Shown here: positions 28,099 to 58,133 of the stretch, in pieces
Layout: every line of letters starts with the position of its first letter
How positions within the stretch are numbered: position 1 is the stretch's first letter
Source: Octopus sinensis
Lineage: Eukaryota
NCBI RefSeq assembly: GCF_006345805.1
Contig: NC_043026.1
Location: 7,936,001-8,000,000 of the forward strand
Length of the DNA: 64,000 nt
Direction of reading: 5' to 3'
The notes under the pieces: generated by a model
What the model was told of the DNA's origin: nothing
The model's database searches: none
Seen by the model: only the letters and a program-made list of their open reading frames with translations
Program-made: the position numbers and the translations under genes

Positions 28099-31000
28099 TT
28101 ATTTGTCATAATAAAAGAAAGCAAAAGATTGAAGTCCAGGAATAATTCCAAAAACAATGAAAGAATTGTCTGAAATATCAAAACCGAGAACTACGAAGAC
28201 TTCATTATCATCCCATCTGAGGAGTAAATATTTTGGATTATCTTCAGATATCAGGATTTCAATATCTTCAGATGTTTCCTCTTCAATATGTCCAGGTATT
28301 TGGAAAATATTGTTGTCTCTATCTGTTATATAAACACATTCACTAATTTTGGTCAGACGAGGTCTTGGAATATAAAATCCCTTACTAATATATATTCCTT
28401 TTATTCTTATCCTCCTCACCAACAACTTTTCTCTGAACCATTCCACAAAACAGAAATCATCAAGCTCTAATCCATCCTCCCACCTCACAACAACAACATC
28501 ACCAAAAGATGTGACTCCCACACCATCCACCCCTGCATCTCCTTCCAACCTTCCATATCTCCCCATCTTCCCACGACACACTTCATCTTTACATTTCCCA
28601 TCTTTGATATCAACCACATCCACATAATAAGGGTCAAAGATGTCAGGGTCGATGCAATAATAGTAATCCTTGTTGTTGTACCTTCTTCTTTGGTATTTCT
28701 TGTCTCTCTCTTCTTGAGTTATGTCTCTAATATAATGACCACCACACACAAGTTGATTGTCGTTGTATTTATAAATCCTGTTGTAGTATTTCTCAGTACT
28801 GATGGTTTTTAAACGACGGAGATCCCTGTTGAAGACCCTCATTTCTCTCCCAAAGGCGACAATGAAACATTCATCTGTCCACCGACATATGTCCAGTGGT
28901 GGTCGTTGTTGTTGTTCATGTTGAAGTATGTCCACTGTTGTTGTTGTTGTTCTGATTAATGTGACACTTCCTCGAAACATCAACACACTCACATTCTCAT
29001 CTAACTTAATTAGTTTACTGTTCCAATCCCTAATGTCCATAAAATCGTAATTAACAGGTTCCTTAAATGCAGGAATGGAAAAAGGGACCATTGCTGTCCT
29101 ATATGGAAGTCTCCTCACTGATATTTCATCAATTCCTGAATTATTAATCTCTGCTATGTAATTACCACATCTCACCTTTAATCTACCTTTACCAATTATT
29201 TCACCTGATTTACCTCTTCTCCCTCCTTCTCCATCTCTTCCTCTGTATTCCAATTTATTAATTAATTCATTACTGAATATTTCCTTGTTCGTTTCAGATG
29301 TAATGGAAGGGAAACGAAGACCAGAATCAAGATTTAATAACGACACAGATTCCAGAATGTTCACTTGGTCCCCATCAATCTTTATGCAATGATATTCAAT
29401 CAATTCATTATGTACACACCAGTAAATACCCGCCACTTTTCTCCCTATTACACCATAAGGGATGAGACTCGACCAAACTTGAGATGTCTGCAAATCTTCT
29501 CCATTCAGTTGAAATATTTCTTCCCTTTTAGGAACCGTGGCCATTATGTGTGATTCTTGTGTAAAACACACACCACCAACTAAACTTGCAACATTTCTGT
29601 GACATAGCAACTGGCCGTCTTCATCGAATATTTTAACATTTCCATTATTGGCTTTTTCACACACAACTGTCTTTCCTTCCTCAGAGACATCAAAATCTTT
29701 CACTTGAACAGGACATTCGTCTGTTTGTAAACGAGCAACCGGGAAGCTGTCTCGATTCACCATAAACAACCCTTCAACATACAATTCATTCTCTCTTCCC
29801 CATTTCCCAAGGCTTCCAACAAACCTTGGTCCTTTACAGTCTATACTGGAGAAAAGTACTTCATCTTTATAAATTCTTTTATTTAAGAATATTCTGTTGT
29901 ATTCCCCTTTCTGGGTCAAACAGAAAATGTTTTTATATCTATTCATACCTAAATATTTATTCCACCTAATATAAACATACAAATAGCTGTCATCAATTGT
30001 CATTCTGTCATCATCATCAATACCATACCCCATGTAGTGTCTGACTGAATGTAAATATTGACCACCACTGTTGAAGAAAATGATGAATCTTTTGTTGAAG
30101 ACAATGATGACATCTTCAGCAGTAACTTTAATATCCTCAATGTCATTAATATATTTTCTACCATCATCTTTGTCCATAGTTAACAATGGTTCAGGTATGT
30201 CTATTTGTTCTATTTCCTCCACACTCGAATGTATTTCATCAATATCAACAAAATACAAATGACCTCCGTCTCTCAATTTACTACAAACCAGTTGATTATT
30301 TGATAAAGAAGCCACACATTTATAATTACTTCTTGTTTGATAAATTACCAACGACAATGGAAATTCCACTTTTAATGTCAACAGTTGGTATTTATTATCA
30401 TCAAAATAATCCCCAGTCGTAATGACCAGTGTGTTTGACTGCCATCGACACATTTTAATATAATTATAAACATTAAATTTGATAGAATTCAAAAGTTGAC
30501 CATCAAATGTGAATATCTTAATGCTTTCACTCCGCGAGTCCCATCTCGCAATGAGGTTATTTCCAGTAAGAACCAAACGATTAATCCTCAACAGTCCTTC
30601 ATCTCCCAAACTTTGAGGGAGAGGAATATGTCTGGCTTTATCAGAAACTGTCAGGTCCTGTAGATATAAAGTGGAAGACAACATTTCACTGACAGAAATG
30701 TTTCTGGAAAATACATCCACCAGGTCGATATAATAATTAAGTTGATTATTAGTAACGAGATCATTAACCAACAAATTCTGATCGTTTATGGTAAACATAC
30801 GGCTTCTGTCTACCAGATAAACAAACGTTTGGTCAATAGATCCACCTTGGAGACTGAGGGGATGTTTCACTTGGGACATTAAAACACTGGGGACCATCTG
30901 ACGACTGCCATGACCACCACCACCTATTCTAGTGTTGTACTGAAAAGCTTTTCCCCTTGTAACAATTAATAGCTTTTCTGTTTTCTTGTCTATTGATAAT

Positions 31001-33495
31001 GATTTTACAAACACAGGGATATTAATTGTCTTAATTACTTCAACTTGATTATAATAATTGATGGCTAAAATGTCTAATTGTGATGGTTTATCACAATAAC
31101 AAACAATTTCACATTCACCCATCTTACACACCCGTACATAAGGCTGCCTTAATGATATACTTCTCACTGTCTTTGATAGGTTTCCGATGACCCTTAATTG
31201 TTTCTGTAGGGGTAATGTGACCCCTATATGATCAGAATCCCATCGACATATATCTGTGGCTGTAGACGGCAGAGGTAATCTGGACACAATGTCTCCTTCC
31301 TTAGAAATGTACAACAAGCAATCATGCTTGATGTCAGACACCACAAACTGTCCATTGGACAGATTACATATTTCGCCAATGACAAGTTTTTGGTCATTCT
31401 CTTTTTCTTTGAGTCGTAGATTTAGATTTCTGATATAAGGATTTTTCGTGTGTAAACAACAGCCAGACGACCAGTCTTGATTCTTGTAAAGAAGAACCCT
31501 GTTGATTTGAGTGTCCGGAACATAAAGAGTTCCTTGGAAAACAGCAATGTGAGGGTGAACAGGGAAAGGCAGTTCCCACTGCCATTTCATTTCTCCATAT
31601 AGATCGTAACATCTGAGAATAGAGTGTCTCTTGAAGAGGACATAGAAATAAACATTATCAGAGTAGATGTGATGAGGGTAGCCATAGAATGGAAGGTATT
31701 TTTGAAAAAGTTCTTCACCACATGTGGAATAAAATACCATTTTATTTTCGTTTCCATCTACGACTACAAAATTAATTGGAGTTGCAGCAATGCTGACATT
31801 ATGATGTCCCAGAGAAATTCTTTCTGCAATGTCAACTTTATCTTCGTTGATCAATAGGATATGGACCTCGATTTTGTTTTCAGTGGTGGTCACAGCCAGA
31901 CACTTATTTGATACAATATGACATATTTTGATGTAACCAGTTTGCACCTTTATTAAAGGGCCTTTTCTTAGTTCAGGACAGGTGATATACTGAAACCCTT
32001 TCATTTCACAATAAAATACCAGGAATCTGTTTGCGTTTATTCTACAACAGAAAGAAGGAAGCTCAAAGAAAACTGAATTATTTTGGTTAATTATTTCCCC
32101 ATTATCAGTGAATAATTTAGCTTTCTTGTTTTTGTAAATTATTAATATAGAAGATGTAGACATAGGTAGAATATTTGTAATGTTGTAGCAATCCTCAATA
32201 TCAATATAGTCTTTTAAACTGGGGGTATGTAGCTGGTGGTTGTATGACAGTTTGGGCCAAAAGTCTTTATTCATTTGAATACCATGTGGTTTGCCGCAAT
32301 AATCTGTAACCAAAATGGTATCTTTACCAACAGAAATAGAGTGGCATTTCCTGCCAATGTCCCTCCTTGTTACACCACCTTTAGCTGAAATCCTATAAAT
32401 TATTTGTCCCTGGAGGACATAGAAATAATTTTGGTACAGAGAGATTTTACTTGGGAGGTGCAGAGAATGGGTCTCTACCTCCCATAACTGTTGGCCATCC
32501 AGTTTGTAACAGATTACTCTGTTGATGCTGGCGAATGTAATTACAAGTATATTCTGGACCCCTACAGCAATATCTGTAGGTGTTTCTTTGGTAATAAATT
32601 GATAGTTAATGGTATTATCCTCCCAATCAAATTGGTAAACTGTCTTACCAAACATTTCTACACCTATAAGTGTAGAATCTTCCAAGTAACTCACCATATA
32701 TAACCCCAACTTTATCCTTTTGATCTTGAAGGTTTTGGGGCTGATAATAAGAATCATTTCTTGGAAGGGGAGGGTTGCCAGAACCATGTCTTCACTGATT
32801 CTTGTGAAACTGGTCACAGAAGATGGACAATGGACATCAATTCTGTCACTGTCTCTTGTTACTAAATTTATTATCTTATAATGGTGGGAATATGTCATCA
32901 CTCCCTCCTCTATGATGACAATATTGGATATTATTGGGATTTCTTCAAATTCTTCTCCAGATTCCTCAATATCTGCTTCTCTGGTCACAACTGGCTGAAG
33001 AGGCCGAAATTTTGTGGTCACTTTTGGTGGTTCAATGTTCTTGTGGTTGTATGGGTTACAGGTGACATAAATGTCAAAGAGTCTTTGTTGAAACCAATCA
33101 AGGTTTTGGTGAACAAAATCATTATTTTGTTTTGCAATTTCCAGAAATCTTGGCATTTTACGTTTGATATTACGTAAAATTCGAGATCCATCTAAACCCA
33201 GAGAGTCCATGTGATTACATTTATCCTTTACATAATCTATAAACGTATTGATGTGGTCTGTTTTGATTAGTGTTCGGTAACATGTCACAATATGAAGATA
33301 TCTTGGTAACATGGACTTTTCCTGTTCTTTAGATTTCTTTGTGTCTTTTCTTTCCTGTTCTTCTGTTTTCTTTGTGTTTTGTGTGTGTAATATTTGGGGA
33401 AGAATTGGTGTAGTTTCCTTATAAATTGCTGTTGTATCACAGACTGTGGCAGGAATGAGAGCCAACATTTTGTTTTCTTCATTAATCTTCTCCAT
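28099..33495 (-). CDS. 1798-aa single-ORF protein: N-terminal helical/charged region, acidic linker, then about six tandem NHL/SMP-30-like beta-propeller domains (similar to mollusc TRIM-like propeller proteins, but no RING or B-box visible)
   Basis: 5.4-kb ORF with no stop in repeat-rich AT-rich DNA; the motif P/A-x-D/S-I-C-R-W-x4-hydrophobic-V-T-L-P recurs about every 260-290 aa (SVTSFTRISEDMVLATLP, LPSFCCRINANRFLVFY, TATDICRWDSDHIGVTLP, YIKMCRWQSNTLVIT, VGGVCFTQESHIMATVP, PLDICRWTDECFIVAF); paralog at 53034-58133; no signal peptide or TM segment evident. Confidence 0.85.
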   Translation of the reverse strand: MEKINEENKMLALIPATVCDTTAIYKETTPILPQILHTQNTKKTEEQERKDTKKSKEQEKSMLPRYLHIVTCYRTLIKTDHINTFIDYVKDKCNHMDSLGLDGSRILRNIKRKMPRFLEIAKQNNDFVHQNLDWFQQRLFDIYVTCNPYNHKNIEPPKVTTKFRPLQPVVTREADIEESGEEFEEIPIISNIVIIEEGVMTYSHHYKIINLVTRDSDRIDVHCPSSVTSFTRISEDMVLATLPFQEMILIISPKTFKIKRIKLGLYMVSYLEDSTLIGVEMFGKTVYQFDWEDNTINYQFITKETPTDIAVGVQNILVITFASINRVICYKLDGQQLWEVETHSLHLPSKISLYQNYFYVLQGQIIYRISAKGGVTRRDIGRKCHSISVGKDTILVTDYCGKPHGIQMNKDFWPKLSYNHQLHTPSLKDYIDIEDCYNITNILPMSTSSILIIYKNKKAKLFTDNGEIINQNNSVFFELPSFCCRINANRFLVFYCEMKGFQYITCPELRKGPLIKVQTGYIKICHIVSNKCLAVTTTENKIEVHILLINEDKVDIAERISLGHHNVSIAATPINFVVVDGNENKMVFYSTCGEELFQKYLPFYGYPHHIYSDNVYFYVLFKRHSILRCYDLYGEMKWQWELPFPVHPHIAVFQGTLYVPDTQINRVLLYKNQDWSSGCCLHTKNPYIRNLNLRLKEKENDQKLVIGEICNLSNGQFVVSDIKHDCLLYISKEGDIVSRLPLPSTATDICRWDSDHIGVTLPLQKQLRVIGNLSKTVRSISLRQPYVRVCKMGECEIVCYCDKPSQLDILAINYYNQVEVIKTINIPVFVKSLSIDKKTEKLLIVTRGKAFQYNTRIGGGGHGSRQMVPSVLMSQVKHPLSLQGGSIDQTFVYLVDRSRMFTINDQNLLVNDLVTNNQLNYYIDLVDVFSRNISVSEMLSSTLYLQDLTVSDKARHIPLPQSLGDEGLLRINRLVLTGNNLIARWDSRSESIKIFTFDGQLLNSIKFNVYNYIKMCRWQSNTLVITTGDYFDDNKYQLLTLKVEFPLSLVIYQTRSNYKCVASLSNNQLVCSKLRDGGHLYFVDIDEIHSSVEEIEQIDIPEPLLTMDKDDGRKYINDIEDIKVTAEDVIIVFNKRFIIFFNSGGQYLHSVRHYMGYGIDDDDRMTIDDSYLYVYIRWNKYLGMNRYKNIFCLTQKGEYNRIFLNKRIYKDEVLFSSIDCKGPRFVGSLGKWGRENELYVEGLFMVNRDSFPVARLQTDECPVQVKDFDVSEEGKTVVCEKANNGNVKIFDEDGQLLCHRNVASLVGGVCFTQESHIMATVPKREEIFQLNGEDLQTSQVWSSLIPYGVIGRKVAGIYWCVHNELIEYHCIKIDGDQVNILESVSLLNLDSGLRFPSITSETNKEIFSNELINKLEYRGRDGEGGRRGKSGEIIGKGRLKVRCGNYIAEINNSGIDEISVRRLPYRTAMVPFSIPAFKEPVNYDFMDIRDWNSKLIKLDENVSVLMFRGSVTLIRTTTTTVDILQHEQQQRPPLDICRWTDECFIVAFGREMRVFNRDLRRLKTISTEKYYNRIYKYNDNQLVCGGHYIRDITQEERDKKYQRRRYNNKDYYYCIDPDIFDPYYVDVVDIKDGKCKDEVCRGKMGRYGRLEGDAGVDGVGVTSFGDVVVVRWEDGLELDDFCFVEWFREKLLVRRIRIKGIYISKGFYIPRPRLTKISECVYITDRDNNIFQIPGHIEEETSEDIEILISEDNPKYLLLRWDDNEVFVVLGFDISDNSFIVFGIIPGLQSFAFFYYDK

Positions 33496-35929
33496 TTTAT
33501 GAATATAGAATTATTATCTTTTTCTGTTAAATATATTATTTTCTGTGGATTTTGTTTTCTTCCTTTCGAATACAATTTATCTCTTCAAAATTCACTAATT
33601 TTTACAGCAAAGCTGAAATAAAATGAAAACTTTATTAGTTTTGTGAAAAGCTTTTGATAAAATGATATTTACTTGATTCATTCAAAGAATTTCAAGGAAA
33701 AAACACATTTCATTAAATATATTAAACAAATTGTTTATTTGACAGTGAAGTTAAACATTTAAACTGTTTTCAATGGAATAATCATTAGAAATAAAACTTG
33801 AAGATATAAATACACCATTATCTTTATTGACTGAATATAAGTGATGGTGAAAAGTTTTGTAGTAAGAAGGAATATAAATATTTTGTTGAGGTTATTTCTA
33901 CAGATATTATCGGTAGAAATTATAACAAGGACTGATTTCCTGCTACAACATTTCATATCGAAATGTCAGACGGAAACAAACAATGAGATCAAAGAGAAAA
34001 ACATCTGTTGTTTGTTCTCATTGTTTATCTCATTGTTTGTTTACATCTGACATCTCGATAGGAAACGTTTTAGCAAGAAATCAGAGCCAACTATAATTTC
34101 TATGGAATATCAATAGAATAATGTGAAAAACACTGCTAACAAAGTAGAATGTGTTGTTGACTTCTAAAACGATTTAATATATTTTACAGGAATTTATGGT
34201 TGCATAATGAAATACCACGTCCCTACAAATCAGGAATATAAGTATTATTAATAATTATATGCACTGGAAATGATGTGACAGTCATGGTTGGCTTGGTTTC
34301 CGTCATATTTACCTGGATTCACAGATACCAATAAAGCTGGAGATGAAACTGTTCTTAACCTGACAAATGCTGTAAATCTCTCGACATTTCAATATAATCC
34401 ACACAATTATCATACACAACATTGATTAACTCGGAAAGCTTATCCAAAGATGGGCTTTCATATAATCACACTGATAGACAGCATGTTGAGAGGATCGTTA
34501 TTATTTGTTGCTGATTGAGATTAATAAAGATTGGTTAATGAATAAGCCCAATTAATGGAAGGTAGGTTCATCTTAATTATCTTTAATATAAGGGACAATG
34601 TTTGGGTAGCAATGAGAAAGATGTGTTTGTATGAAAAAGGGGTTTGACAGGTGAAGTGTGTTTTGTTTTGTGTCAGGTGAGGAGTTATAACTTGGTGTAG
34701 TTTATTATGAAGTATTGGGGGTTTAATGAGGTGGATTAGGTAATATTGGTGGGGGTGTTTAATGACATTCTGGTGACCCATCATTATCAGAATGATCCTC
34801 CACCGCCTCCTTGGTCTATGAAATAATGACTGTTACTCTATTGACCCCAGGAGGAATGAAAAATAAAAGAGACCTTCTTCAGGATGTCAGCTCTTTGAAT
34901 AAACATGGACTAAACAACAACATATTTTTGGGGAAAAGCTGGATAAGGCTATGTTGTTGTTATTGCTGTTGTTGTAGGCAACAAAGTTTATAAAGAGAAA
35001 AGCAGATAATTGCAAATATTTCTATTGTAAAATTAAATTGGAATGAATGTTTATGTTTCATTTGTGCCATTCTACTTGGTTTATTTTGGGGAAGAAAAAC
35101 CTACAAAACCCCTCATAATAATTATATTAGACTTTAATCTAATTGTGTTTGTATTTATATACACATGCATACATATATATGAATGAATGTGTATAATATA
35201 TAGACAAAGAAAGATGCACATATGTATATTTATACATCCATACATCTGTATGTATGTATAATCATCATCATTTTACCCCCACTTTTCATGCTGGAATCCG
35301 TTGGAAGGTTCAGAGAATATCTTGCCTGAAGTTACATTTTCTGGTTTTCTTTCTGCAGCTGGATGCTCTTCCTGACACCAACCACTGCACAATGTGCACT
35401 GGGTGCATCTTATGGCACCGTCACTAGAGACGACCGCCATGTCCTTGACAAAACTAAAGGTTCCCCTCAATCTCTGGGTGTGACATATACCTTGGGATGG
35501 GTGAGAGATCTAGGGTAATAAATATATGAAAAGGAGTGGCTGAGTGTTGGGGAGAGACCCAGGTAGGTCCAGTAACATCCCTAGTTTCATTGGAAGAATG
35601 GTGAAGAGAAGAGATTTACTGCCAATCTTTGTTACAGCAGTAAGATAGTAGAGTAAAAAGAAGAAGAGAGAGTGATTGAGAGATGAAAGATAGAAAGATA
35701 CTTCTGCTAATTATTAATAAGTATATATATATATATATATATACATACATACATACATACATACATACACATATATAGACAGACACATTTTGAATGACTT
35801 CTGACTCCATCAAAAGAGGATAGGTATCTTTATTTTTCACATTTAATCACAGATATCTTTATTCTGATGTATAATTTTATATTTTATATTTGACATTTTA
35901 TACTTGACTTTCTAAGTTTGATAATCATC

Positions 35930-44179: not shown

Positions 44180-47100
44180 TCATCATCATCATCATCATCA
44201 TCATCATTATCATTTAGCGTCCGCTTTCCATGCTAGCATGGGTTGGACGGTTCAACTGGGGTCTGTGAAGCCAGAAGGCTGCACCAGGCCCAGTCTGATC
44301 TGGCAATGTTTCTACGGCTGGATGCCCTTCCTAACGCCAACCACTCCGTGAGTGTAGTGGGTGCTTTTTATGTGCCACCCGCACAGGTGCCAGAGGAGCT
44401 GGCAAACGTCCACGGACAGATGGTGCTTTTTACGTGCCACCGGCACGGGGCCCGGCGAGGCTGGCAACGGCCACGATCGGATGGTGCTTTTTACGTGCCC
44501 CTGGCACGGGGGCCAGGCGAGGCTGGCAACGGCCACGAACGGATGGTGCTTTTTACGTGCCCTTGGCACGGGGGCCAGGCGAAGCTGGCAACGGCCACGA
44601 ATGGATGGTGCTACGTGCCACTGGCACGGAGGCCAGGCGAGGCTGGCAACGGCCACGAATGGATGGTGCTTTTTACGTGCCACCGGCACGGAGGCCAGTC
44701 GGGGCGGCGCTGGCAACGGCTACGATCGGATGGTTCGCTTACTTGTCACCGGCACTGGTATCACAGCTGCAATTTCCATTGATGTTAATCGACTTCGATT
44801 TTGGTTCTGCTTTCTGATATCTGATTTGATTTGGTTTGATTTTGATTTTGATTTTCACTTGCCTCAATTGGTCTTCACAAGTGGAGTTTTGTGTCCCAGG
44901 AAGAAAAGGTATGTATAAGTCGACTGGCTACATACCAGGTAGAGACCATGGGTTATGGTCTCACTAGTCTTGCCGGGTCTTCTGACGCACAGCATACTTC
45001 CATAGGTCTCGGTCTCTAGTCATTTCCTTGGTAAGACCTAAAGTTCGAAGGTCGTGCTTCACCACCTCGTCCCAGATTTTCCTGGCTCTACCTCTTCCAC
45101 AGGTTCCCTCAACCGCTAGGGTGTGGCACTTTTGCACACAACTATCTTCAGCCATTCTCGTCACACGACCATACCAGCGCAAACGTCTCTCTTGCACACC
45201 ACAACTGATGCTTAGGTCCAACTTTTCTCTCAAGGTACTTACACTCTGTCGATTATGAACACTGACATTACACATCCATCGGAGCATACTGGCTTCATTT
45301 CTTGCGAGCTTACGCATATCCTCAGCAGTCACAGCCCATGTTTCACTACCATGTAGCATGGCTGTACGTACACATGCATCATACAGTCTGCCTTTTACTC
45401 TGAGCGAGAGGCCTTTTGTCATCAGCAGGGGTAAGAGCTCTCTAAACTTTGCCCAGGCTATTCTTACTCTAGCAGTTACACTTTCAGCACACCCACCCCC
45501 GCTACTGACTTGGTCACCTAGATAGCGGAAGCTATCAACTACTTCTAGTTTTTCTCCCTGGAACGAGGTAGAAGTTGATCTCTGCACATTTTCAGTGTTT
45601 ATTGCTCCTGAGCATCTGCCACAGACAAAAACTATCTTCCCAGTTAGCCTTCCTTTGACATTGCTGCACCTCTTATGTGTCCATAGCTTACACTTGGTGC
45701 ACTTTATAGATTTTCTACCTATGCCTTTTCTACAGATCGAGCAGGGCCATCTACCTGAAGGCGTTTGTGATTGGTCTACCTTCCTACTTATTAGGACTTT
45801 GGTTTTGGCTAGGTTGATTCTAAGGCCCTTCGATTCTAAACCTTGCTTCCACACCTGAAACTTCTCCAGTTCTGATAGTGACTCAGCAATTAGAGCAAGG
45901 TCATCAGCATGGAGGAGCTCCCAGGGGCATCCTGTCTTGAATTCCTCCGTTATTGCCTGGTGGACTATGATAAGTAGGAGGGGACTGAGGACTGAACCCT
46001 GGTAGACCCCAACCTCTACTCGGAATTCTTCACTGTACTCGTTGCCAACCCTCACCTTACTAGCAGCGCCTCTGTACATGGCTCGCACAGCTCTCACTAA
46101 CCATTCATCTATCCCTTGTTTCCTCATTGACCACCAGATAAGGGATCGGGGGACCCTGCCGAAGGCTTTCTCCATGTCAACAAAAGCCAGGTACAGGGGC
46201 TTATCTTTGGCTAGGTATTTCTCCTGCAGCTGTCTTACCAGGAATATAGCATCATTGGTATCTCATCTAACTGCATCTCATCTAAACTAACTCTCTCTCT
46301 CTAATTAGTTGGGCTATAACCCTCTCCGTAACCTTCATTACCTGATCCAGCAGCTTGATACCCCTGTAGTTAGACATTCGGCAGACTCTCTTTATCCCAT
46401 TCATTTTCCTCATTCAGCAACCTTTCATAGTGGCGTCTCCAAATCTCTCTCTTTGCATCCTCATTTAGCGCAGGTGAACCGTCATCCTTGCGAACACATT
46501 TCTCTCCTACCACGTCATGATTCTCTCTCACACACTGTCTTGCAACACGAAATACCTCATGTCTTTCATCCTCACGGAGCAGGACATTGGCAATTTTTTT
46601 CTTATCTGCTTCCCCTCTGGCTAAATACACCTGCCTCCTAGCTTCCCTTCTGGCAGTCTGATACACTTCCCTGCAACCACCGTTCTTCCAGTCCTTCCAA
46701 GCCAGTCTCTTTTGTCTAATAGCCCTGTCAACAATATTGTTCCACCACCACGTTATTTTGGGTCTTGAGGGGACTTCTCACCAGCCACAGATCTGGTCAG
46801 TGGCTTTCAGCAGGTTGTCCCTTAGAAGCGTCCAGTTGTCTTCTACCCTATGTGTTGCTATACCCCCTTCTATTACGTCGAAGGCTTCAAGTAACATGTC
46901 TCTAAATCTCTGTCCATTCGCAGGGTCTTTAAGCTTCCAGACCCTTCTTCTCCATGTTGGTCGTCTTCTAGTCGTCCTCTTAGTCCTGATCCTAAAGTCA
47001 CTAACTACCAGTCTATGTTGTGGGGTACATTCTTCGCCTGGGAAGGTTTGGGCATTTATAAGCAGCCATCTTTCCCTTTTTCTGGCAAGGATGTAGTCGA

Positions 47101-48030
47101 TTTGGCTAGTATGCCGGCCCGATCGGAAGGTGACCAGGTGGCTTGTCGGTTTTCTGAAGTTAGTGTTGCAAACCATAAGACTATTCGCATCGCAGAACTC
47201 CAGCAGCCTGATTCCCTCCTCGTTGCGGGAACCATAACCGTAGCCTCCATGTACGCCATGGAAGACCCCAGCATATCGTCCAACATGCCCATTGAAGTCA
47301 CCAGCCACAAAGAGAAGGTCCCTGCCATTCGTCAATGAGGTGGTCTGCAGTAGGGTGTCATAGAAACGGTCTTTCTGTCCATCGGGTAGCCCTGGCTGAG
47401 GGGTATAGGCCGATATAATAGTTGCTAAACTATGATGGAGCACTAATCTAATCTTCAGTATTCTGTCACATACTCTGACTACCTCGATTAACTAATCTAC
47501 CCATTTTTCGGCGATAAGTATACCCACACCCCCGACCCCATCAGTATTCCCAGCCCAGAAAATCTTGTACCTCTGTCCTTTGCCTGTGAGGAACCTAGCA
47601 GAACCTCCTCTCCACCTCACTTCTTGAATGCTGCATATATCAACACACCTCCGTTCAAGCAATTCAACGATCTCGCCAGATCTGCCTTTCAGTGTGCCAA
47701 CGTTGAGGGTGCCAACCCTGAGGGTGTGGGAGGTATTGGCCCTAGTAGCGTCATGAACCTGAAAAGAAAACTCGCGTTTGGCAGGATTCATATACAAACA
47801 ATAAAACTCAAGTTCAAACCGCGTACACTACACTAACATATCTTGCAATGAATGACCACTACCTTTTATGGAAGTAGGTGGGGGTGTCGTAAACTTTGAA
47901 GTGTACATGGGAGACAACAAGGATGAGAAAATTTAGGACTTCCTATACCGGTGGAGTGGGTGGGAGGGCGGGTGCACCGCGAACACTAGCAGCCATGTAC
48001 GCCATTCCTTTCTTGGAAAGGAATACTTAT
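44180..48030 (-). mobile_element. Near full-length RTE-clade LINE (APE endonuclease + RT + PHD-like finger), inactivated by frameshifts and an internal deletion
   Basis: APE motifs LRVGTLNVGTL, IQEVRW, SAYTPQ, AGDFNGHVG, SQIDYIL and QHRLVV (46778-47797); RT second half in ORF 44964-46175; (GAT)n tail near 44180; much of the RT N-terminal part is missing near 46290-46380. Confidence 0.95.
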
Positions 48031-50080: not shown

Positions 50081-50817
50081 TCTATACATACAATTACCCG
50101 CCTACGTACACATAAATACATCCATAAATACATACATATACACACACCGTTTACTTCACTCGTGTTCTGTCCAAATCGAAGTTTACCTTTCTTTTTCACG
50201 TCCAAATTAGTTATAATTCCTAATTAATGACTTAATTGTGACACATTTTATGTCATTTAATTCATTAAAATGCTGACAATGTCTCTTTTACTGCAAATAA
50301 ATAATTTAGACAGAGTTTTTAGACTCGGATTTCCCGCTTTTTTCCCCACGTTTTTGTCATTCAAATTGTCGTTGCTAGGCAACGGACAGAAATAATTGAA
50401 CGGGAAGCGGCAGAAGTTATAGAGAGACTCCAGACTGGGCGGTTTGTGTGATACCAGACCCGAAATATCACCAGACACCTTTAAGCATGGGTGGTTACAG
50501 ATGGATTTACCCGTCGTCTTTCCTATGTGTGTGCAAGAAGGCTACGTATAATAATATATAATTATATGTATATATATCTGTAGGTGTATATATATCTGAG
50601 TTTATATATGAATATGCATGTATATATAATATTCTGCTTTCCTGTGAGTATAATTATGATGTATATTTATATTCCTATATAAATGTATCAGCAATCCTAT
50701 ACAGTAGAGTCGGAAATTATCCAATACCTCAAATATTCCAACATCTTTTGATATTTCTTTTTTAAACTTGTACATATACATGAATAAATGTATACACAAA
50801 CACATACATTTCTACAG

Positions 50818-50874
<57 letters not shown>

Positions 50875-51585
50875 CATCCTGTGGCATAACTACAGATGAG
50901 CACCCCATCGACTTTGTTTCCTCATAACTTCCAGGAAAATGGATATTTTTAATGAAACTTCCACTTTCATTTTCTAACAAAAGAAATCAAAAGAAATCCT
51001 CTTTTACAAAGCTCTTATTTAAATCCCTGTGGATAAATCAGCAAGAATCTTCTCAGGCTCTCCAATATTTTACAATTATATAAAGAGAAAGAATCGGGGA
51101 CCAGGAAGTGGGGCTAAAAATAATCATAGATTTTTAAAATGTTCTTTTTAAATTTTTATAACATAAATGTGTTTCTGAGGGAAAAATATTGAAAAACATC
51201 AAAACATTGAATGAGAGAAAGAGAAGACAAGGAGGGTGGGGTGCTAGAAATAACAGCCAAATCTCCCTTAAATCACACACTTTTTCCCTCGAACCCTTAC
51301 AAAATATTTTGCCAACAAATTTCTTTTTAATCGTAATCTACTTCGTTTGAAAGTTATTTCTATAAAATTTCATTCAAAATTACCCAATTTCCTGAAATTT
51401 ATGAGAAGGGAAAATGTCTGGTTGTGTGAATTTCAGAAAATTTTTTTCCAACAAATCCTTACAAAAACTCAATCTACAGGAACTAAACGATTATTTGTTG
51501 AAAGTTTCATTTAAAAAATATCCATTTTTCTGCAAGTTATGAGGAAACAAAGTCGGTGGGGTATATATCTGTAGTTATGTCGAAT
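50875..51585. mobile_element. MITE/non-autonomous DNA-transposon-like element with inverted arms of about 90 bp
   Basis: CATAACTACAGAT...TTTGTTTCCTCATAACTT...ATGGATATTTTT mirrored by AAAAATATCCAT...AAGTTATGAGGAAACAAA...ATCTGTAGTTATG. Confidence 0.65.
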
Positions 51586-53033
51586 TTGCTTCCTCACAAC
51601 TTTCGCAAAATTAAATATTTTTTAATGAAATTTTCTACAAATATTCAGATGGTTTAGATTCCGATTAAATGGAATTATTGTGAAAACCGTTGTCCCTGGG
51701 TGGGAAAAGCAGTTTTAGAAAATTCACAAGATTCGCCTTTGTTATGAAAGAAAAAAAGTTTTTCCAATAAATCCCCATAGAATCGGAATCTACACCATCT
51801 GAAGCATATTGTAGGAAATTCCATGAAAAATATCCATTTCCCTGCGGTATTAGGGAAGAAGCATATACATCATCGAAGAACATTTATACACATGTATATT
51901 TATATATACCTACATTACACACATGTCTTTGCTATGTTTTTAAAACACATAAAACTCATAGATGCATACTTTTATAATATTTTACACTTAAACCGCCACA
52001 GGACAATATTTTTAGAGTTGCTTCTAAAAGTGACCTTCACTTTTTTTATGAAAAACGATACAAATTTCAGAGTATTTGGCTGTTATTTCTAGCATGATGT
52101 TAGGCCATCTATAGGACAATATTTGACATGGATGCTTTGTAAATAAAAATGTGAAGGTTTTTGTGGCTCTTTCTAGCATGAAATGAGACCATATACAGGT
52201 CAATTTTATTTATGAATGCTTCTTAAAGTGTCCTTCAAATTTTATATGAAAAATAAATTGGTTTCTATTTCTAGCGTGGAAAATGACCAGCTATGGGAAA
52301 GCTTTTACTGAATGCTTCTTAAAGTGTCCTTCTCTTTTTTTCTGAACCCCCAACAGCAACAACAACAACAAGAACCCTACGAGGACGAAAGGCAATGTTT
52401 GTGCGTGTGTGCAGTTGGAATGTCACTGCAACAACAACAACAACAATCTATTCTTATTAAACGTTAAAAACTGTCAGATGCAGACTGCACACACGCACAC
52501 ACGACACTGATGACGACGGTGATGATGATGATGGTGATGATGGTGATGGTGACGATGATGATGATGATGATGACGACGACGATGATAATGATGATGATGA
52601 TGATGACGACGACGACGGCGGAGACGACGACGACGACGGCGGAGACGACGACGACGACGGCGGAGACGGCGTTGGTGGTCGTCTGCCTTTTAATGGAGAA
52701 TCAATGATTATGAAAGTCTCTGCTTCGGACCAGACATTCTATACATACATGCATGGTATATAATATATATACACACACAAACATAATATTATAGCCTTTT
52801 TTATACATACATTCCTAAATATGTGTGTATATATATATAACACACATGTACATATACTGTATATAAATATATACACACACACCACAAAGAGAGAGTGTTG
52901 AGGAATGTTACAACAATAAGTGTCAGTGTGTAGATGCAATGTATGCGATGCAGGTTCGATTCCCGGCGAAGCCATTTACAACAACAACAATAATAAGAAG
53001 AAGAAGATTGAAGTTTAATATTTCTGGAAATAT

Positions 53034-56000
53034 TTATTTGTCAAAATAAAAGAAAGCAAAAGATTGAGGTCCAGGAATAATTCCAAAAACCATCAAAGAA
53101 TTGTCTGAAACATCCAAACCAAGAACTTCATAGACTTCATTATCATACCCTCTGAGGAGTAAATATTTTGGATTATCTTTTAATCTCAGGATTTCATCAT
53201 CTTCAGATGTTTCCTCTTCAATATGTCCAGGTATTTCGTAAATATTGTTTATGAAATCTGTTATATAAACACATTCACCAATTATGGTCAGACGAGGTCT
53301 TGGAATATAATATTCCCAACCATAAAACATTCCTCCTTCTATTCTTATCCTCCTCACCAAAGACTTTTCCCTGAACCATTCCACAAAACACAAAACTTCC
53401 CCCCATCCAGACTCATTCTTCATCTCCTTCCTCAAAACAACAACATCACCAAAAGATGTGACTCCCACACCATCCACCCCTTCTTCTCCCTCAAACCTTC
53501 CCCCTCTCCTCTTCTTCCCACGACACACTTCATCTTTACATTTCCCATCTTTGATATCAACCACATCCACATAATAAGGGTCAAAGATGTAGGGGTCTTT
53601 GCAATAATAGTAAAAATGTTGTTCTCCCATATTCTTTGGTATTTCTTGTCTCTCTCTTCTTGAGTTATGTCTCTAATATAATGACCACCACACACGAGTT
53701 GATTGTCGTTGTATTTATAAATCCTGTTGTAGTATTTCTCAGTTTGATGGTTTTTAAACAAAGAGATCCCTGTGAAGACCCTCATTTCTCTCCCAAAGGC
53801 GACAATGAAACATTCCTCTGTCCACCGACATATGTCCAGTGGTGGTCGTTGTTGTTGTTCATGTTGAAGTATGTCCACTGTTGTTGTTGTTGTGTTCTGA
53901 TTAATGTGACACTTTCTCGAAACATCAACACACTCACATTCTCATCTAACTTAATTAGTTTACTGTTCCAGTCCCTAATGTCCCTAAAATCATAATCAAC
54001 AGGTTCCTCGAATGCAGGAATGAAAAAAGGGACCATTGCTGTCCTATATGGAAGTCTCCTCACTGATATTTCATCAATTCCTGAATTATTAATCTCCGCT
54101 ATGTAATTACCACATCTCACCTTTAATCTACCTTTACCAATTATTTCACCTGATTTACCTATTCTTTTTCTTCCCCCATCTCCATCTCCTTCTCTGTATT
54201 CCAATTTATTAATTAATTCATTACTGAATATTTCCTTGTTCGTTTCAGATGTAATGGAAGGGAAACGAAGACCAGAATCAAGATTTAATGACGACACAGA
54301 TTCCAGAATGTTCACTTGGTCCCCATCAATTTATGCAATGACATTCAATCAATTCATTATGTACACACCAGTAAATACCCGCCACTTTTCTCCATATTAC
54401 ACCATAGGGATGAGACTCGACCAACTTGAGATGTCTGCAAATCTTCTCCATTCAGTTGAAATATTTCTTTCCTTTTAGGAACCGTGGCCATTATGTGTGA
54501 TTCTTGTGTAAAACACACACCACCAACTAAACTTGCAACATTTCTGTGACATAGCAACTGGCCGTCTTCATCGAATATTTTAACATTTCCATTATTGGCT
54601 TTTTCACACACAACTGTCTTTCCTTCCTCAGAGACATCAAAATCTTTCACTTGAACAGGACATTCGTCTGTTTGTAAACGAGCAACCGGGAAGCTGTCTC
54701 GATTCACCATAAACAACCCTTCAACATACAATTCATTCCTTCCCCTCCTGGGGCTTCCAACAAACCTTGGTCCTTTACAGTCTATACTGGAGAAATATAC
54801 TCCACCTTTGTAAATTCTTTTATTTAAAAATATTCTCTTGTATTCCCCTTTCTGGGTAAAACACAAAATGTTTTGATATCCAAATGGACGAAAACATTTC
54901 TCCCAATAACCATAAATGTACAAAAAACTGTCATCGATTGTCATCCTGTCATCATCACCATCACCAATATAAGCCTCCATGTAGTGTCTGACTGAATGTA
55001 AATATTGACCACCACTGTTGAAGAAAATGATGAATCTCAAGTTTAAGACAATGATGACATCTTCATCAGTAACTTTAATATCCTGGATTATATCACAATA
55101 ATTTCCATCTTCTCTTCTCCCTATTAATGGTTCAGGTATGTCTATTTTTTTTATTTCCTTCACACTCGAATGTATTTCATCAATATCAACAAAATGCAAA
55201 TGTCTTCCATCTCTCCCTTTACTCAAAACCAGTTGATTGTTTGATAAAGAAGCCACACAATAATATTTATTTCTCGTTTTGTAAATTACCAACGACAATG
55301 GAAATTCCACTTTTAATGTCAACAGTTGGTGTTTATTATAATCAAAACGATCCCAATTCGTAATGACCAGTGTGTTTGACTGCCATCGACACATTTTAAT
55401 ACAATCATAAAGATTCACTTTGATTGAATCCAATAGGTGACCATCCAATGTGAATATCTTAATGTTTCCATTCCTCTCGTCCCATCCTGCAATCAGATTA
55501 TTTTCAGTAAGAACCAAACGATCAATCCCCACTGTTTCTTTGTCTCCCAAATATTTAGGGAGAGGAATACGTCTGGCTTTATCAGAAACTGTCAGGTCCT
55601 GTACATATAAAGTGGAAGACAACATTTCACTGAGAGAAATGTGTCTGGCAAATACATCCACCAGGTCGATATAATAATTAAGTTGATTATTAGTAACGAG
55701 ATCATTAACCAACAAATTCTGATCGTTTATGGTAAACATACGGCTTCTGTCTATCAGAAACAGACGTTTGGTCAAGAAACCACCTTGGAGACTGAGGGGA
55801 CGTTTCACTGGGACATTAAAACACTGGGGACCATCTGACGACTGCCATGACCACCACCACCTATTCTAGTGTTGTACTGAAAAGCTTTTCCCCTAGTAAC
55901 AATTAATAGCTTTTTGTTGTTTTTTCTATTGATAATGATTTTACAAACACAGGGATATTAATTGTCTTAATTACTTCAACTTGATATAATAATTGATGGC

Positions 56001-58133
56001 TAAAATGTCTAAATGTGATGGTTTATCACAATAACAAACAATTTCACATTCACCCATCTTACACTCCGACATAAGGCTGCCTTAATGATATACTTCTCAC
56101 TGTCTTTGATAGGTTTCCGATGACCCTTAATTGTTTCTGTAGGGGTAATGTGACCCCTATATGATTAGAATCCCATCGACATATCTGTGGCTGTAGACGG
56201 CAGAGATATCTGGACACTGTCTCCTTCCTGAGAATGTACAACAAGCAATCATGGATTGATGTCAGACACCACCAACTGTCCATTGGACAGATTACATATT
56301 TCGCCAATGACAAGTTTTTGGTCATTCTCCTTTTCTTTGAGTCGTAGATTAGATTTCTGATATAGGATTTTTAAGGGGTAAAAAAGGCAGGCAGACGACC
56401 GGTTCTTGATTCTTGTAAAGAAGAACCCTGTTGAGTTGAGTGTCCGGGACATAAAGAGTTCCTTGGAAAACAGCAATGTGAGGGTGAACAGGGAAAGGCA
56501 GTTCCCACTGCCATTTCATTTCTCCATATAGATCGTAACATCTGAGAATAGAGTTGTCTCCTGAAGAAGGACATAGAATAAACATTATCAGAGTAGATGT
56601 GATGAGGGTGGCCATAGAATGGAAGGTATTTTTGAAAAAGTTCTTCACCACATGTGGAATAAAATACCATTTTATTTTCGTTTCCATCTACGACTACAAA
56701 ATTAATTGGAGTTGCAGCAATGCTGACATTATGATGTCCCAGAGAAATTCTTTCTGCAATGTCAACTTTATCTTCGTTGATCAAGAGGATATGGACCTCA
56801 CTTTTGTTTTCAGTGGTGGTCACAGCCAGACACTTATTTGATACAATATGACATATTTTCTTGTAACCAGTTTGCACCTTTATTAAAGGGCCTCTTCTTA
56901 GTTCAGGACAGGTGATATACTGAAATCCTTTCTTTTCACGATAAAATACCAGGAATCTGTTTGCGTTTATTCTACAACAGAAAGAAGGAAGCTCAAGGAA
57001 AACTGAATTATTTTGGTTAATTATTTCCCCGTTATCAGTGAATAATTTAGCTTTCTTGTTTTTGTAAATTATTAATATAGAAGATGTAGACATAGGTAGA
57101 ATATTAAGTAATGTTGTAGCAATCCTCAATATCAATATAGTCTTTTAAACTGGGGGTATGTAGCTGGTGGTTGTATGACAGTTTGGGCAAAAGTCTTTAT
57201 TCATTTGAATACCATGTGGTTTGCCGCAATAATCTGTAACCAAAATGGTATCTTTACCAACAGAAATAGAGCGGCATTTCTGCCAATGTCCCTCCTTGTT
57301 ACACCACCTTTAGCTGAAATCCTATAAATTATTTGTCCCTCGAGGACATAGAAATAATTTTGGTACAGAGAGATTTTACTAGGGAGGTGCAGAGAATGGG
57401 TCTCTACCTCCCATAACTGTTGGCCATCCAGTTTGTAACAGATTACTCTGTTGATGCTGGCGAATGTAATTACAAGTATATTCTGGACCCCTACAGCAAT
57501 ATCTGTAGGGTTTCTTTGGTAATAAATTGATAGTTAATGGTATTATCCTCCCAATCAAATTGGTAAACTGTTTTACCAAACATTTCTACACCTAAGTGTA
57601 GAGTGTAGAATTTCCAAGTAACTCACCATATGTAACCCCAACTGTATCCTTTTGATCTTGAAGGTTTTGGGGCTGATAATAAGAATCATTTCTTGGAAGG
57701 GGAGGGTTGCCAGAACCATGTCTTCACTGATTCTTGTGAAACTGGTCACAGAAGATGGACAATGGACATCAATTCTGTCACTGTCTCTTGTTACTAAACT
57801 TATTATCTTGCAATGGTGGGAATATGTCATCACTCCCTCCTCTATAATGACAATATTGGATATTATTGGGATTTCTTCAAATTCTTCTCCAGATTCCTCA
57901 ATATCTGCTTCTCTAGTCACAACTGACTGAAGAGGCCGAAATTTTGTGATTATTTTTGGTGCTTCAATGGTTTTGTGTTTGTCTTGTAGAATATTTCTTT
58001 GTATATAGTGTTCCAGGAACAATTCTAGTTTTCCAAAAATTATAAATTCTTGATTGTAATCGTGTTTTTTAATGTCTTTCGTCAGAATTCCTATTCTCTG
58101 TGTAAAATGTTTTAGAAAAGTATTTTCATCCAT
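53034..58133 (-). pseudogene. Paralog of the 1798-aa multi-propeller gene, fragmented by many 1-2 bp indels (pseudogene or consensus errors)
   Basis: ORFs 57573-58133, 56371-57135, 56349-56687, 56059-56325, 54357-55808, 53782-54315, 53432-53878 and 53034-53630 tile colinearly onto 28099-33495 and end in SFAFFYFDK versus SFAFFYYDK. Confidence 0.9.

Follow-up and report, generated by a model that had tools for sequence, protein, structure and literature searches.

The window, a 64,000-nucleotide stretch of scaffold C30 of Octopus sinensis, carries two copies of a long gene on its minus strand, and we consider it fairly probable that both belong to an octopod-restricted array of beta-propeller genes in which gene conversion and the diversification of propeller faces have given rise to a candidate binding repertoire. 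Judged from the aligned sequences, diversifying selection on one face of propeller 4 and on part of propeller 6, as in the binding surfaces of recognition proteins, appears to be real. The family is previously undescribed within the literature searched and has no annotated domain; full-text literature searches delivered no paper describing it or naming its LOC identifiers.

Genes and predicted protein architecture

Copy 1 (P0001) is intact and apparently intronless, with an open frame of 1803 aa from stop to stop. Its exact sequence was not found in a collection of 15 billion proteins, and the absence of this intact 1798-aa ORF from public protein sets is a warning for annotation. The conserved region upstream of it is probably its 5'UTR/promoter. 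No signal peptide and no transmembrane segment were detected in the ORF as read, which is compatible with a cytosolic product and with the intracellular location proposed in the preliminary description. Copy 2 is broken by about 27 frameshifting indels of 1-2 nt and is thus not an intact gene as assembled. The features, in positions of the window, are:

28099..33495, minus strand: copy 1 (P0001), intact single-exon ORF of 1798 aa
33496..34158, minus strand: region upstream of copy 1, about 660 nt, 97% conserved relative to the upstream region of the O. vulgaris paralog P0003
33058..33303, minus strand: N-terminal helical head of type 1, aa 65-146, with AF2 helices at 65-98, 103-123 and 125-146 (pLDDT about 62-77)
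32260..32928, minus strand: propeller 1, aa 190-412, 23 predicted strands
31480..32214, minus strand: propeller 2, aa 428-672, 23 predicted strands, under purifying selection
30646..31398, minus strand: propeller 3, aa about 700-950, boundary inferred
29773..30633, minus strand: propeller 4, aa 955-1241, 24 strands, with 12 hypervariable and 11 invariant loops
29110..29772, minus strand: 'propeller 5', aa 1242-1462, more homogeneous than any other block of the family (dS about 0.02)
28102..29106, minus strand: propeller 6, aa 1464-1798, 26 predicted strands, C-terminal half variable
28240..28419, minus strand: strongest positive-selection patch, propeller 6 aa 1693-1752, omega 4.5
52978..57982, minus strand: copy 2, homology to copy 1 over aa about 150-1798, 92.7% nucleotide identity
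54357..55865, minus strand: frameshift-free stretch of copy 2, 502 codons between stops, which spans propeller 4 and the first part of propeller 5
57983..58142, minus strand: end part of the type 2 helical head of copy 2, matching the heads of P0015, P0018, P0024 and P0030
58161..58260, no strand: assembly gap of 100 N, which cuts off the 5' end of copy 2

AF2 models were built from a shallow alignment of close relatives and reach a moderate quality, with a mean pLDDT of about 62. They combine an all-beta body with helices in the head, and DSSP assigns runs of short strands to the copy 1 protein. Foldseek searches against the PDB matched tandem and triple propellers (E 1e-13 to 1e-21), and a viral NHL protein superposes on one propeller with a TM score of 0.70. 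The two marks of a beta-propeller, four-stranded blades and likeness to solved propellers, are thus seen in the strand runs and in the Foldseek matches; propeller 4 is read as six four-stranded blades because 24 strands (6 x 4) are predicted. With the models cut at aa 899/900, the boundary of propeller 3 had to be inferred; this propeller includes a GGGGHG linker (aa about 858-866) of variable length, with insertions in P0006, P0042 and P0043. The proposed multi-propeller fold holds for most of the protein on the strength of AF2 and Foldseek, but confidence is low for 'propeller 5', whose model is beta-rich with a pLDDT below 50, so that its fold is not established. The N-terminus of copy 1 consists of about 60 disordered, charged residues ahead of the helical head and contains no Cys/His cluster. 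Heads of two alternative types occur in the family, and the type 2 head of copy 2 is without homology to that of copy 1.

Divergence, selection and paralog exchange

The DNA alignment of copy 1 (28043-33050) with copy 2 (52978-57982) is 92.7% identical, and no homology exists between the first approximately 148 aa. Identity in 150-nt windows is 96-99% over aa 180-927, 78-89% over aa 927-1270, 99% over aa 1275-1325 and 73-92% over aa 1620-1798, which bears out the mosaic described earlier. That description was also accurate in its details. DKARHIP lies at 30642 in copy 1 (aa 952 of the minus-strand ORF 28099-33495) and DKARRIP at 55583 in copy 2; over the 152 aa of propeller 4 that start there, 38 positions differ, six of them by E/Q-to-K charge swaps, the 105 aa from NELYVEG to LQTSQV differ at one, and the translations contain every loop string that was quoted. 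Where the copies differ by in-frame indels, these are all located within variable loops or the low-complexity stretch.

Less of the evolutionary reading drawn from this pair was retained. The two copies are indeed adjacent but not an isolated pair, since a third member lies 19 kb past the end of the window and the genome has at least 150 family loci. They are also not each other's nearest paralogs: copy 2 is never the closest relative of copy 1, ranking 10-27 of 29 across blocks. Omega between the two is 1.05 over the whole gene and 1.12 in propeller 4, with dS raised about threefold there (0.130 vs 0.046), the very outcome that the preliminary description had named as speaking against positive selection. 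The mosaic of copies 1 and 2 is a family-wide pattern of conserved and variable blocks viewed in two members, and the same pattern includes proteins of O. vulgaris and O. bimaculoides.

Diversifying selection on the loops of propellers 4 and 6, not supported by the pair alone, emerges among ten intact recombining paralogs, for which omega was calculated by Nei-Gojobori counting. These copies are open across 1,366-1,372 codons, sampled in 4.2-kb loci (aa about 433 to stop). Block A (aa 433-860, propellers 2-3) has an omega of 0.36 (95% CI 0.27-0.49). Block B (aa 927-1270) is marginal overall at 1.27 (0.98-1.70), but within propeller 4 the loops of the variable face reach 1.98 (95% CI 1.35-3.08; P = 0.003) and those of the other face 0.22 (0.07-0.60), while dS is similar in the three site classes of this propeller (0.117, 0.083 and 0.073). 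Block D (aa 1621-1798) has an omega of 1.62 (1.10-2.51), and that of the propeller 6 loops is significantly above 1 (CI 1.03-3.35). Within a window chosen post hoc, aa 1693-1752, omega is 4.5 (95% CI 2.5-12.6), and disjoint pairs give Nd 84.2 vs Sd 3.8 (P = 9e-6). Values near 1 were obtained for blocks B0 (aa 870-926), C1 (aa 1271-1400) and C2 (aa 1401-1620) and for the propeller 4 strands. An alignment of 25 homologues from three species shows strict alternation of variable and invariant loops among the 23 of propeller 4 (0.648 vs 0.23, permutation p = 5e-5), each loop of the first set being more variable than each of the second; the variable loops are placed on one face by strand topology, not by coordinates.

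Relaxed constraint, under which unconstrained surface loops drift, conserved blocks reflect purifying selection or recent conversion, and no repertoire function exists, would account for the pairwise omega near 1, for the values near 1 of B0, C1, C2 and the propeller 4 strands, and for a confidence interval of block B that touches 1. We regard it as unlikely, because omega significantly exceeds 1 in the variable-face loops of propeller 4, the propeller 6 loops and aa 1693-1752, because the opposite-face loops of propeller 4 are constrained at similar dS, and because misalignment would draw omega toward 1, not above it. Furthermore, about 30 frames of 1800 aa remain open at a dS of about 0.07-0.09.

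Exchange between paralogs, the other process suggested earlier, is supported at the family level. Each block's tree is rejected on the data of the other blocks (AU tests, p <= 1e-4), and as the block trees are mutually incompatible, gene conversion is indicated. Block C1 has a dS of 0.017 vs 0.064 elsewhere (p = 4e-5), the nearest neighbour of paralogs changes between blocks, and the two head types join the rest of the protein at the same junction. A cross-species mosaic is counted as further evidence of recombination.

Family organisation and alternative origins

The O. sinensis genome contains at least 150 family loci (150 scored matches), of which about 30 have full-length open frames (at least 1700 aa) and many are degenerate. 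About 63 are located on C30, a small chromosome, about 70 on unplaced contigs and a few on other chromosomes; intact members are concentrated on C30 and its O. vulgaris homologue. On C30 the copies are clustered in one orientation at a spacing of about 25-28 kb. A search of 1.84 billion representative sequences gave 29 matches, and family members were found only in octopods (Octopus spp. and Argonauta hians). The homology of copy 2 to an O. vulgaris unit continues for several kb on either side, a sign of segmental duplication. Conserved single-copy members keep the full architecture, and their identity of 99.5% between O. vulgaris and its relative O. sinensis suggests that the family is constrained and functional.

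An ampliconic, germline-expressed or genetic-conflict family, of the meiotic-drive, gamete-recognition or anti-transposon type, would likewise show very many copies crowded on a single small chromosome, conversion between genes, numerous degenerate members and fast turnover. Between species that separated 2.5 My ago, no 1:1 orthologue was found (best O. vulgaris match 88% vs 99.5% for the conserved members), which also fits this alternative; C30 is, however, distinct from the Z chromosome of O. sinensis (chr20), and we consider such a role in place of pathogen recognition rather improbable. The two readings share all sequence evidence and differ in function only.

Assembly or polishing artefacts could in principle create near-identity of the conserved blocks by consensus collapse or cross-paralog short-read polishing, so that the mosaic would not be biological. 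PacBio reads underlie the O. sinensis assembly, in which many contigs are unplaced, and some family copies may therefore be haplotigs or mis-polished. Copy 2 and several others (L014, L019, L020) have private indel-to-substitution ratios of 0.47-0.62, and nearly every one of these indels is a loss of 1-2 nt outside homopolymers, a pattern not typical of true decay. In addition, the frameshifts of copy 2 avoid the uniquely mappable divergent block: the chance that 27 uniformly placed ones would miss 54357..55865 is P = 2e-4. Copy 2 may be a recent pseudogene; it is about equally likely that the gene is intact and that its assembled sequence carries uncorrected long-read deletion errors, and such indel patterns in neighbouring copies call for caution in annotation. 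There is thus roughly an even chance that errors explain the frameshifts of copy 2, but not the family pattern: the same blocks and loops recur in the independently assembled genomes of O. vulgaris (ONT) and O. bimaculoides, and ten copies open over 1,366-1,372 codons and about 30 loci with frames of at least 1,700 aa stand against an artefact on the scale of the family, which we hold to be very unlikely.

That a mobile or selfish element carries the 5.4-kb ORF as cargo and has spread through the genome is very unlikely: the at least 150 intronless copies of 85-93% nucleotide identity, the few on other chromosomes, the LINE fragments between copies and the fusion of some gene models to hAT-like or zinc-finger domains would fit, but the one-orientation clusters, the shared flanks, a block-structured rather than uniform divergence, the existence of conserved single-copy orthologues and an ORF without reverse transcriptase, transposase, integrase or other Pfam domain speak against it.

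The preferred reading is the propeller array with diversifying faces. Copies 1 and 2 would be adjacent members of a head-to-tail array within a large, apparently intronless octopod family, each gene encoding a protein of about 1800 aa with a charged disordered N-terminus, one of two interchangeable heads and about six tandem six-bladed propellers. Segmental duplication and frequent exchange between paralogs would drive the family, the exchange keeping blocks near-identical, above all aa 1271-1400. The scaffold, made up of propellers 2-3 and a single face of propeller 4, would be kept by purifying selection. On the opposite face of that propeller, and in loops within the C-terminal half of propeller 6, diversifying selection would change both residues and loop lengths. 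As a working model, the conserved propellers and the head may serve assembly or signalling, and the variable faces of propellers 4 and 6 may be ligand-binding surfaces of a germline-encoded intracellular repertoire with many specificities.

Comparison with known systems

Three features of recognition arrays are found here: tandemly clustered paralogs that turn over by birth and death (of at least 150 loci, about 63 lie on C30, some 30 are intact and many are degenerate, and O. vulgaris gave no 1:1 orthologue), omega above 1 confined to a putative binding surface on a constrained scaffold (by counting methods), and exchange among paralogs (AU tests, dS heterogeneity, changing nearest neighbours). 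Constraint on the scaffold, hypervariability of a single face, variable loop lengths and conversion together mark the family as a candidate for a new invertebrate recognition or genetic-conflict system and as a clean natural case of face-specific diversification in a six-bladed propeller. A bolder proposal, to be taken as tentative and on balance doubtful, is a new octopod class of germline-encoded intracellular recognition molecules, with propellers 4 and 6 as hypervariable 'paratopes' and selection and conversion acting across about 30-150 genes, which take up a large part of the smallest chromosome. If true, it would be an animal counterpart of the fungal NWD/HET or plant NLR repertoires, directed against viruses, intracellular parasites or selfish elements. 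Adaptive immunity is not known in cephalopods, and what has been described of their innate repertoire is unremarkable.

Two classes were rejected. A STAND/NLR-type receptor does not fit, as NACHT/NB-ARC is absent from the Pfam matches and the sole non-propeller part is the helical head of about 80 aa. On its domain content a transposable element ORF does not fit either: reverse transcriptase, transposase and integrase gave no match in the ORF, and the reverse transcriptase and endonuclease matches lie in separate LINE fragments between the genes.

The term TRIM-like, used in the preliminary description, found no support in the domain searches. No RING or B-box was found by Pfam in P0001 or five homologues, and P0001 had no Pfam match at E <= 10 except DUF4934 (E 1.2); the term can thus denote at most distant propeller ancestry. 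NHL (PF01436) was not found in P0001, and the conserved paralog P0058 scored 18.5 bits, under the cut-off of 20. WD40 was not found in P0001 either, and homologues gave sub-threshold matches to ANAPC4_WD40 or CFAP43. The family profile matches NHL-bearing molluscan proteins weakly (E 1e-5 to 4e-4 in 1.84 billion sequences), and a PDB profile search reached NHL 'Thin' only at E 1.9. These E values and the sub-threshold Pfam matches point to a probable remote kinship of the family propellers with molluscan propellers of the NHL/TRIM type.

TRIM-NHL and expanded TRIM families (TRIM5alpha, the B30.2 of fish finTRIMs, molluscan RING-B-box-propeller proteins) share with the octopus family lineage-specific tandem expansion and positive selection on loops of the binding domain, a putative one in the octopus proteins. 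Outside octopods, the profile matches that are weakest but still significant come from bivalve proteins that carry RING/B-box and/or NHL repeats, and the three predicted helices ahead of the octopus propellers stand where TRIMs have a coiled coil. Unlike these, P0001 has no RING, B-box or Pfam NHL, has six propellers instead of one and about 1800 aa, and an E3-ligase function is not to be assumed.

The best Foldseek matches of both halves, DDB1, IFT-A (IFT121/122/140/144), Utp21/WDR36, CFAP43/44 and EML, also carry tandem propellers in one chain, a likeness generic to the fold because TM is 0.13-0.23 at 7-11% identity. DDB1-type scaffolds are single-copy, slow-evolving, housekeeping proteins with seven-bladed WD40 propellers, whereas the octopus family is expanded and diversifying.

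The described octopus expansions of protocadherins, zinc fingers and GPCRs are tied to the nervous system. The cephalopod protocadherin, C2H2 zinc finger and GPCR families are octopus-lineage tandem expansions on particular chromosomes, as is the present family, which differs from them in its fold and in having no annotated domain.

The STAND proteins NWD/HET-E/HET-D/HET-R of Podospora anserina reportedly carry hypervariable WD40 propellers, in work attributed to Paoletti et al. 2007 and Chevanne et al. 2010. Both systems are paralog families with concerted evolution of propeller sequence and diversifying selection on one propeller face. The fungal products are intracellular non-self recognition proteins, a role for which the octopus proteins are candidates. 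Unlike the fungal proteins, the octopus family gives no Pfam match to a NACHT/NB-ARC NTPase or effector domain, and it combines six separate six-bladed propellers in an animal lineage, whereas fungal NWD proteins have one WD40 propeller of variable repeat number.

The two copies and the surrounding DNA

Two related genes lie about 25 kb apart on the same strand of the window.

Gene copies and their helical heads
28099-33495, minus strand: copy 1, an uninterrupted open reading frame of 1798 aa (from ORF reading; protein P0001, reference for amino acid numbering)
52978-57982, minus strand: copy 2, homologue of copy 1 (BLASTN, aligned to 28043-33050)
33051-33495: head of copy 1, type 1
57983-58142: head of copy 2, type 2

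No exact match to P0001 was found among about 15 billion public proteins, so the intact frame at 28099-33495 seems to lack annotation in the gene set of O. sinensis. The copies share 92.7% nucleotide identity over 5048 BLASTN columns. Globally aligned to copy 1, copy 2 is interrupted by about 27 frameshifts, caused by indels of 1-2 nt and in one case of 4 nt, and also has seven in-frame indels of 3-9 nt each. Homology to copy 1 ends at about its aa 150; further upstream, copy 2 encodes a different helical segment and then meets an assembly gap of 100 N (58161-58260). Sliding nucleotide identity is 96-99% at aa 180-927, 78-89% at aa 927-1270, 99% at aa 1275-1325, 93-97% at aa 1325-1620 and 73-92% at aa 1620-1798. 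The preliminary description had noted a divergent and a conserved stretch by eye, and its details are accurate: the motifs DKARHIP and DKARRIP start at 30642 and 55583, 38 of the 152 residues from there differ (with six E/Q-K swaps), a single residue differs within the 105 aa from NELYVEG to LQTSQV, and all quoted loop strings are present in the sequence.

Between aa 870 and aa 1798, 23 substitutions and 10 deletions of 1-2 nt are private to copy 2, an indel/substitution ratio of 0.48; this ratio is 0-0.11 in intact copies. A similar excess is found in three further loci of the family, L014 (C10205), L019 (C30:4.57 Mb) and L020 (C30:4.63 Mb), which together with copy 2 span 0.47-0.62 and whose private indels are nearly all deletions of 1-2 nt. 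The deletions of copy 2 fall outside homopolymers, and none of its approximately 27 frameshifts is located in its 1.3-kb divergent stretch (P = 2e-4), which is where polishing short reads would map uniquely. A very recent real pseudogene and uncorrected long-read errors are about equally likely explanations for copy 2 itself. As the high ratios, mostly due to 1-2 nt deletions, are common to copy 2 and the three other loci, they are better explained by a systematic fault of assembly or polishing in this family than by ordinary decay.

Fragments of LINE reverse transcriptase/endonuclease and satellites occur in the DNA between and around both copies.

Other features of the window
1-2362: satellite array with a 10-bp unit ATGACGTTAA, higher-order periods of 25 and 35 bp, about 68% matches, GC 0.31
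4474-5124, 11718-12818, 44964-46175 and 46778-47443: LINE-type reverse transcriptase/endonuclease fragments, ordinary interspersed repeats
5072-5496, plus strand: 84-bp tandem repeat, 5 copies, 76% matches
13956-14766: (GGT)n microsatellite, 270 units
15458-16479: 34-bp tandem array, 30 copies, 94% identity, GC skew 0.6
52457-52763: GAT/GAC-rich low-complexity tract

The stretches 3928-4741 and 45571-46372 are copies of one element and 88.5% identical. The consensus of the 84-bp repeat, which adjoins the reverse transcriptase fragment at 4474-5124, can be read as a C2H2 zinc-finger unit of 28 residues and would represent a piece of an expanded octopus zinc-finger gene or pseudogene. The 34-bp array and the microsatellite give rise to spurious overlapping ORFs at their positions. 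The GAT/GAC-rich tract lies approximately 200-500 bp downstream of the copy 2 stop and reads as poly-Asp on one strand and poly-Ser on the other; no such tract was found downstream of copy 1.

Predicted architecture

AlphaFold2 models were built as two halves (mean pLDDT about 62, shallow alignment). They contain a disordered N-terminus followed by three helices at aa 65-146, all-beta regions at aa 190-412, 428-672, 700-860, 955-1241 (propeller 4, P4) and 1464-1798 (propeller 6, P6), and a beta-rich region with pLDDT <50 at aa 1243-1462 (putative propeller 5). The predicted strands of P4 number 24, i.e. six four-stranded blades. Foldseek searches with both halves delivered tandem and triple-propeller proteins (IFT-A subunits, DDB1, Utp21 and axonemal WD proteins) with E values of 1e-13 to 1e-21 and TM-scores of only 0.13-0.23, as expected with multidomain chains; one propeller superposes with an NHL-repeat protein at TM 0.70 (search of viral models).

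Pfam, PDB sequence and PDB profile searches gave no significant match for the family; RING, B-box and NHL models matched none of the octopus family proteins, and neither a hydrophobic N-terminal signal nor a TM-like segment was found in P0001. The propellers are probably derived from a molluscan NHL/TRIM-type six-bladed propeller, since such domains occur in the weak matches from outside the octopods: a Potamilus protein has a B-box above threshold together with sub-threshold RING and six-bladed-propeller (DUF5128, E 0.08) matches, and an unnamed protein has NHL repeats above threshold. A Mytilus protein among these matches is just under threshold.

The helical head occurs in two unrelated versions, which share the body junction 'KTIExPK..KFRP'. 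This arrangement suggests that heads were swapped by domain shuffling among paralogs or serve as alternative partner modules. The GGGGHG linker (aa 858-866, 30898-30924) is a glycine-rich site of large length variation among homologues: P0006 carries a Ser/Gly/Asp-rich insertion of 70 aa there, and P0042 and P0043 have runs of poly-Ser/Arg. In approximately 12 loci homology seemed to be lost upstream of aa ~865, which was traced to BLAST HSP breaks at this length-variable linker; these loci have full-length open frames.

Block mosaic and selection

Copy 1 was compared with 29 other O. sinensis loci of 4.2 kb each, spanning aa 433-1798.

Median nucleotide identity of the 29 loci to copy 1
Block A, aa 433-860: 96.6%
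Block B0, aa 870-926: 97.6%
Block B, first part, aa 927-1080: 87.1%
Block B, second part, aa 1081-1270: 86.9%
Block C1, aa 1271-1400: 98.7%
Block C2, aa 1401-1620: 94.7%
Block D, aa 1621-1798: 87.6%

By closeness to copy 1, copy 2 ranks 10th to 27th of the 29 loci. In the variable blocks it is copy 1 that stands apart, since copy 2 matches the other loci there at 92.5-93% identity. The same block profile is repeated in the amino acid entropy of 25 homologues from three species. The mosaic belongs to the whole family and not to the pair of copies, and it crosses species. The O. vulgaris protein P0003 has flanks collinear with both flanks of copy 2 (85-93% identity), an upstream region and head 97% identical to copy 1, and variable blocks with 87% identity to copy 1 and 92% to copy 2. 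These flanks and variable blocks, compared with 99.5% amino acid identity in true orthologues, rule out P0003 as the copy 2 orthologue, and the annotated O. vulgaris proteins yielded no 1:1 orthologue.

Maximum-likelihood trees of blocks B, C (C1 plus C2, aa 1271-1620) and D from 29 loci are mutually incompatible, each alignment rejecting the other two trees (delta lnL 109-161, p-AU at most 1e-4), and the nearest neighbours of loci switch between blocks. The synonymous difference in block C1 is 0.017 per site versus 0.064 in blocks A, B and D (Fisher p = 4e-5), for which constraint at the protein level is insufficient and homogenisation by conversion sufficient. Paralogs exchange sequence, and both results uphold the gene conversion that had been proposed from the sequence of the two copies. 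Block C1 (29296-29685) is the most homogeneous of the family, and copy 2 is 100% identical to several paralogs there; it also lies in the sole region that AlphaFold failed to model (pLDDT <50). C1 may be a hotspot of conversion or be subject to a further constraint at the nucleotide level. For recent copying of the divergent block of copy 2 from another paralog, no donor was found among 29 loci (of at least 150), the best match being only 94.8% identical.

Codon analyses of the family were limited to aa 433-1798 of the 4.2-kb loci L001-L030; dN/dS (omega) was estimated from ten paralogs with frames open over the loci by all-pairs Nei-Gojobori with codon bootstrap and phylogenetically disjoint pairs.

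Substitution rates by block and site class (95% CI in brackets)
Copy 1/copy 2, aa 150-926: dS 0.046, dN 0.033, omega 0.73
Copy 1/copy 2, aa 927-1270 (P4): dS 0.130, dN 0.146, omega 1.12
Copy 1/copy 2, aa 1271-1400: dS 0, dN 0.0135 (4 nonsynonymous differences)
Ten paralogs, block A: omega 0.36 (0.27-0.49), P(omega<1) = 5e-8
Ten paralogs, block B: omega 1.27 (0.98-1.70)
Ten paralogs, blocks C1 and C2: omega about 1, few changes
Ten paralogs, block D: omega 1.62 (1.10-2.51), P = 0.008
Ten paralogs, aa 1693-1752: omega 4.5 (2.5-12.6), P = 9e-6, window picked post hoc
P4, variable-face loops: omega 1.98 (1.35-3.08), P = 0.003, dS 0.117
P4, other-face loops: omega 0.22 (0.07-0.60), dS 0.083
P4, strands: omega 1.04, dS 0.073

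Positive selection on the loops of P4 and P6, as put forward in the preliminary description, does not emerge from the pair of copies but is found across the ten paralogs (omega >1). In the pair, dS of P4 rises alongside dN, a result that the preliminary description had named in advance as refuting its claim; the blocks of the two copies thus differ in ancestry. The scaffold is under purifying selection.

The 23 inter-strand loops assigned from the predicted strands of P4 strictly alternate between variable and invariant in the ten O. sinensis paralogs. This alternation is repeated in the three-species protein alignment (mean diversity 0.648 vs 0.23, permutation p = 5e-5), where the least diverse loop of the variable set still lies above the most diverse loop of the invariant set; the probability of so clean a split by chance is 1.5e-6. 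Because the loops along a beta-meander emerge alternately on the two faces of a propeller, the variability of P4 would be confined to one face of the modelled fold. The codon site classes confirm this reading. In the C-terminal half of P6, alternate loops have an omega of 1.73 (1.03-3.35). All in-frame indels between copy 1 and copy 2 lie within variable loops or a low-complexity stretch; omega >1 and loop-length variation occur on one face of P4 and on P6 loops. Targeted hypermutation was set aside, as dS of the variable loops is not clearly above that of neighbouring sites (0.073-0.083); with dS similar across the P4 site classes, selection is sufficient and hypermutation unneeded.

Family range and possible role

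A genome search with the conserved 130-aa block delivered 150 scored matches from 171 candidates. Among the scored matches, about 63 family loci lie on C30, the scaffold that contains the window at 7,936,001-8,000,000, where they span 1.49-15.09 Mb, about 70 on unplaced contigs and roughly a dozen across nine further scaffolds of chromosome scale; around 30 of the loci are surrounded by open frames of at least 1700 aa. Z-linkage of C30 was ruled out, the Z of O. sinensis being chr20.

Third member of the local array
C30:8018875-8019264, minus strand: match to the conserved block, 19 kb past the window end, open frame of 569 aa

Its position and identical orientation give the local array a period of about 25-28 kb and extend it beyond the window.

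Word-based searches found homologues in O. vulgaris, O. sinensis and O. bimaculoides, all 'uncharacterized' and without a Pfam domain; the majority of the O. vulgaris members are located on a single 29.2-Mb chromosome. Among 1.84 billion representative proteins, a profile search matched only 29, which belong to Octopus species and Argonauta hians apart from a few weakly matching bivalve proteins. Two conserved single-copy subfamilies are located on large chromosomes. For one of them, P0053/P0079/P0080, identity reaches 99.5% when O. vulgaris is compared with O. sinensis and is 91% to O. bimaculoides; P0053 and P0001 share 41% identity over the full length. No description of the family or its LOC identifiers was found in the literature. 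The family is large, octopod-restricted and clustered, consists of six-propeller proteins and carries modular heads.

The variable faces of P4 and P6 may bind diverse ligands, the head and the conserved propellers may supply assembly or signalling, and the proteins may form an intracellular repertoire for recognition. The parallels with TRIM5/finTRIM and with fungal WD40 genes of the NWD/HET type make an immune role plausible; the sequence data agree equally well with a role in the germline or in genetic conflict. Both architecture and lineage are new, and the evolutionary mode, that of a diversifying, converting receptor array, is of a known kind.
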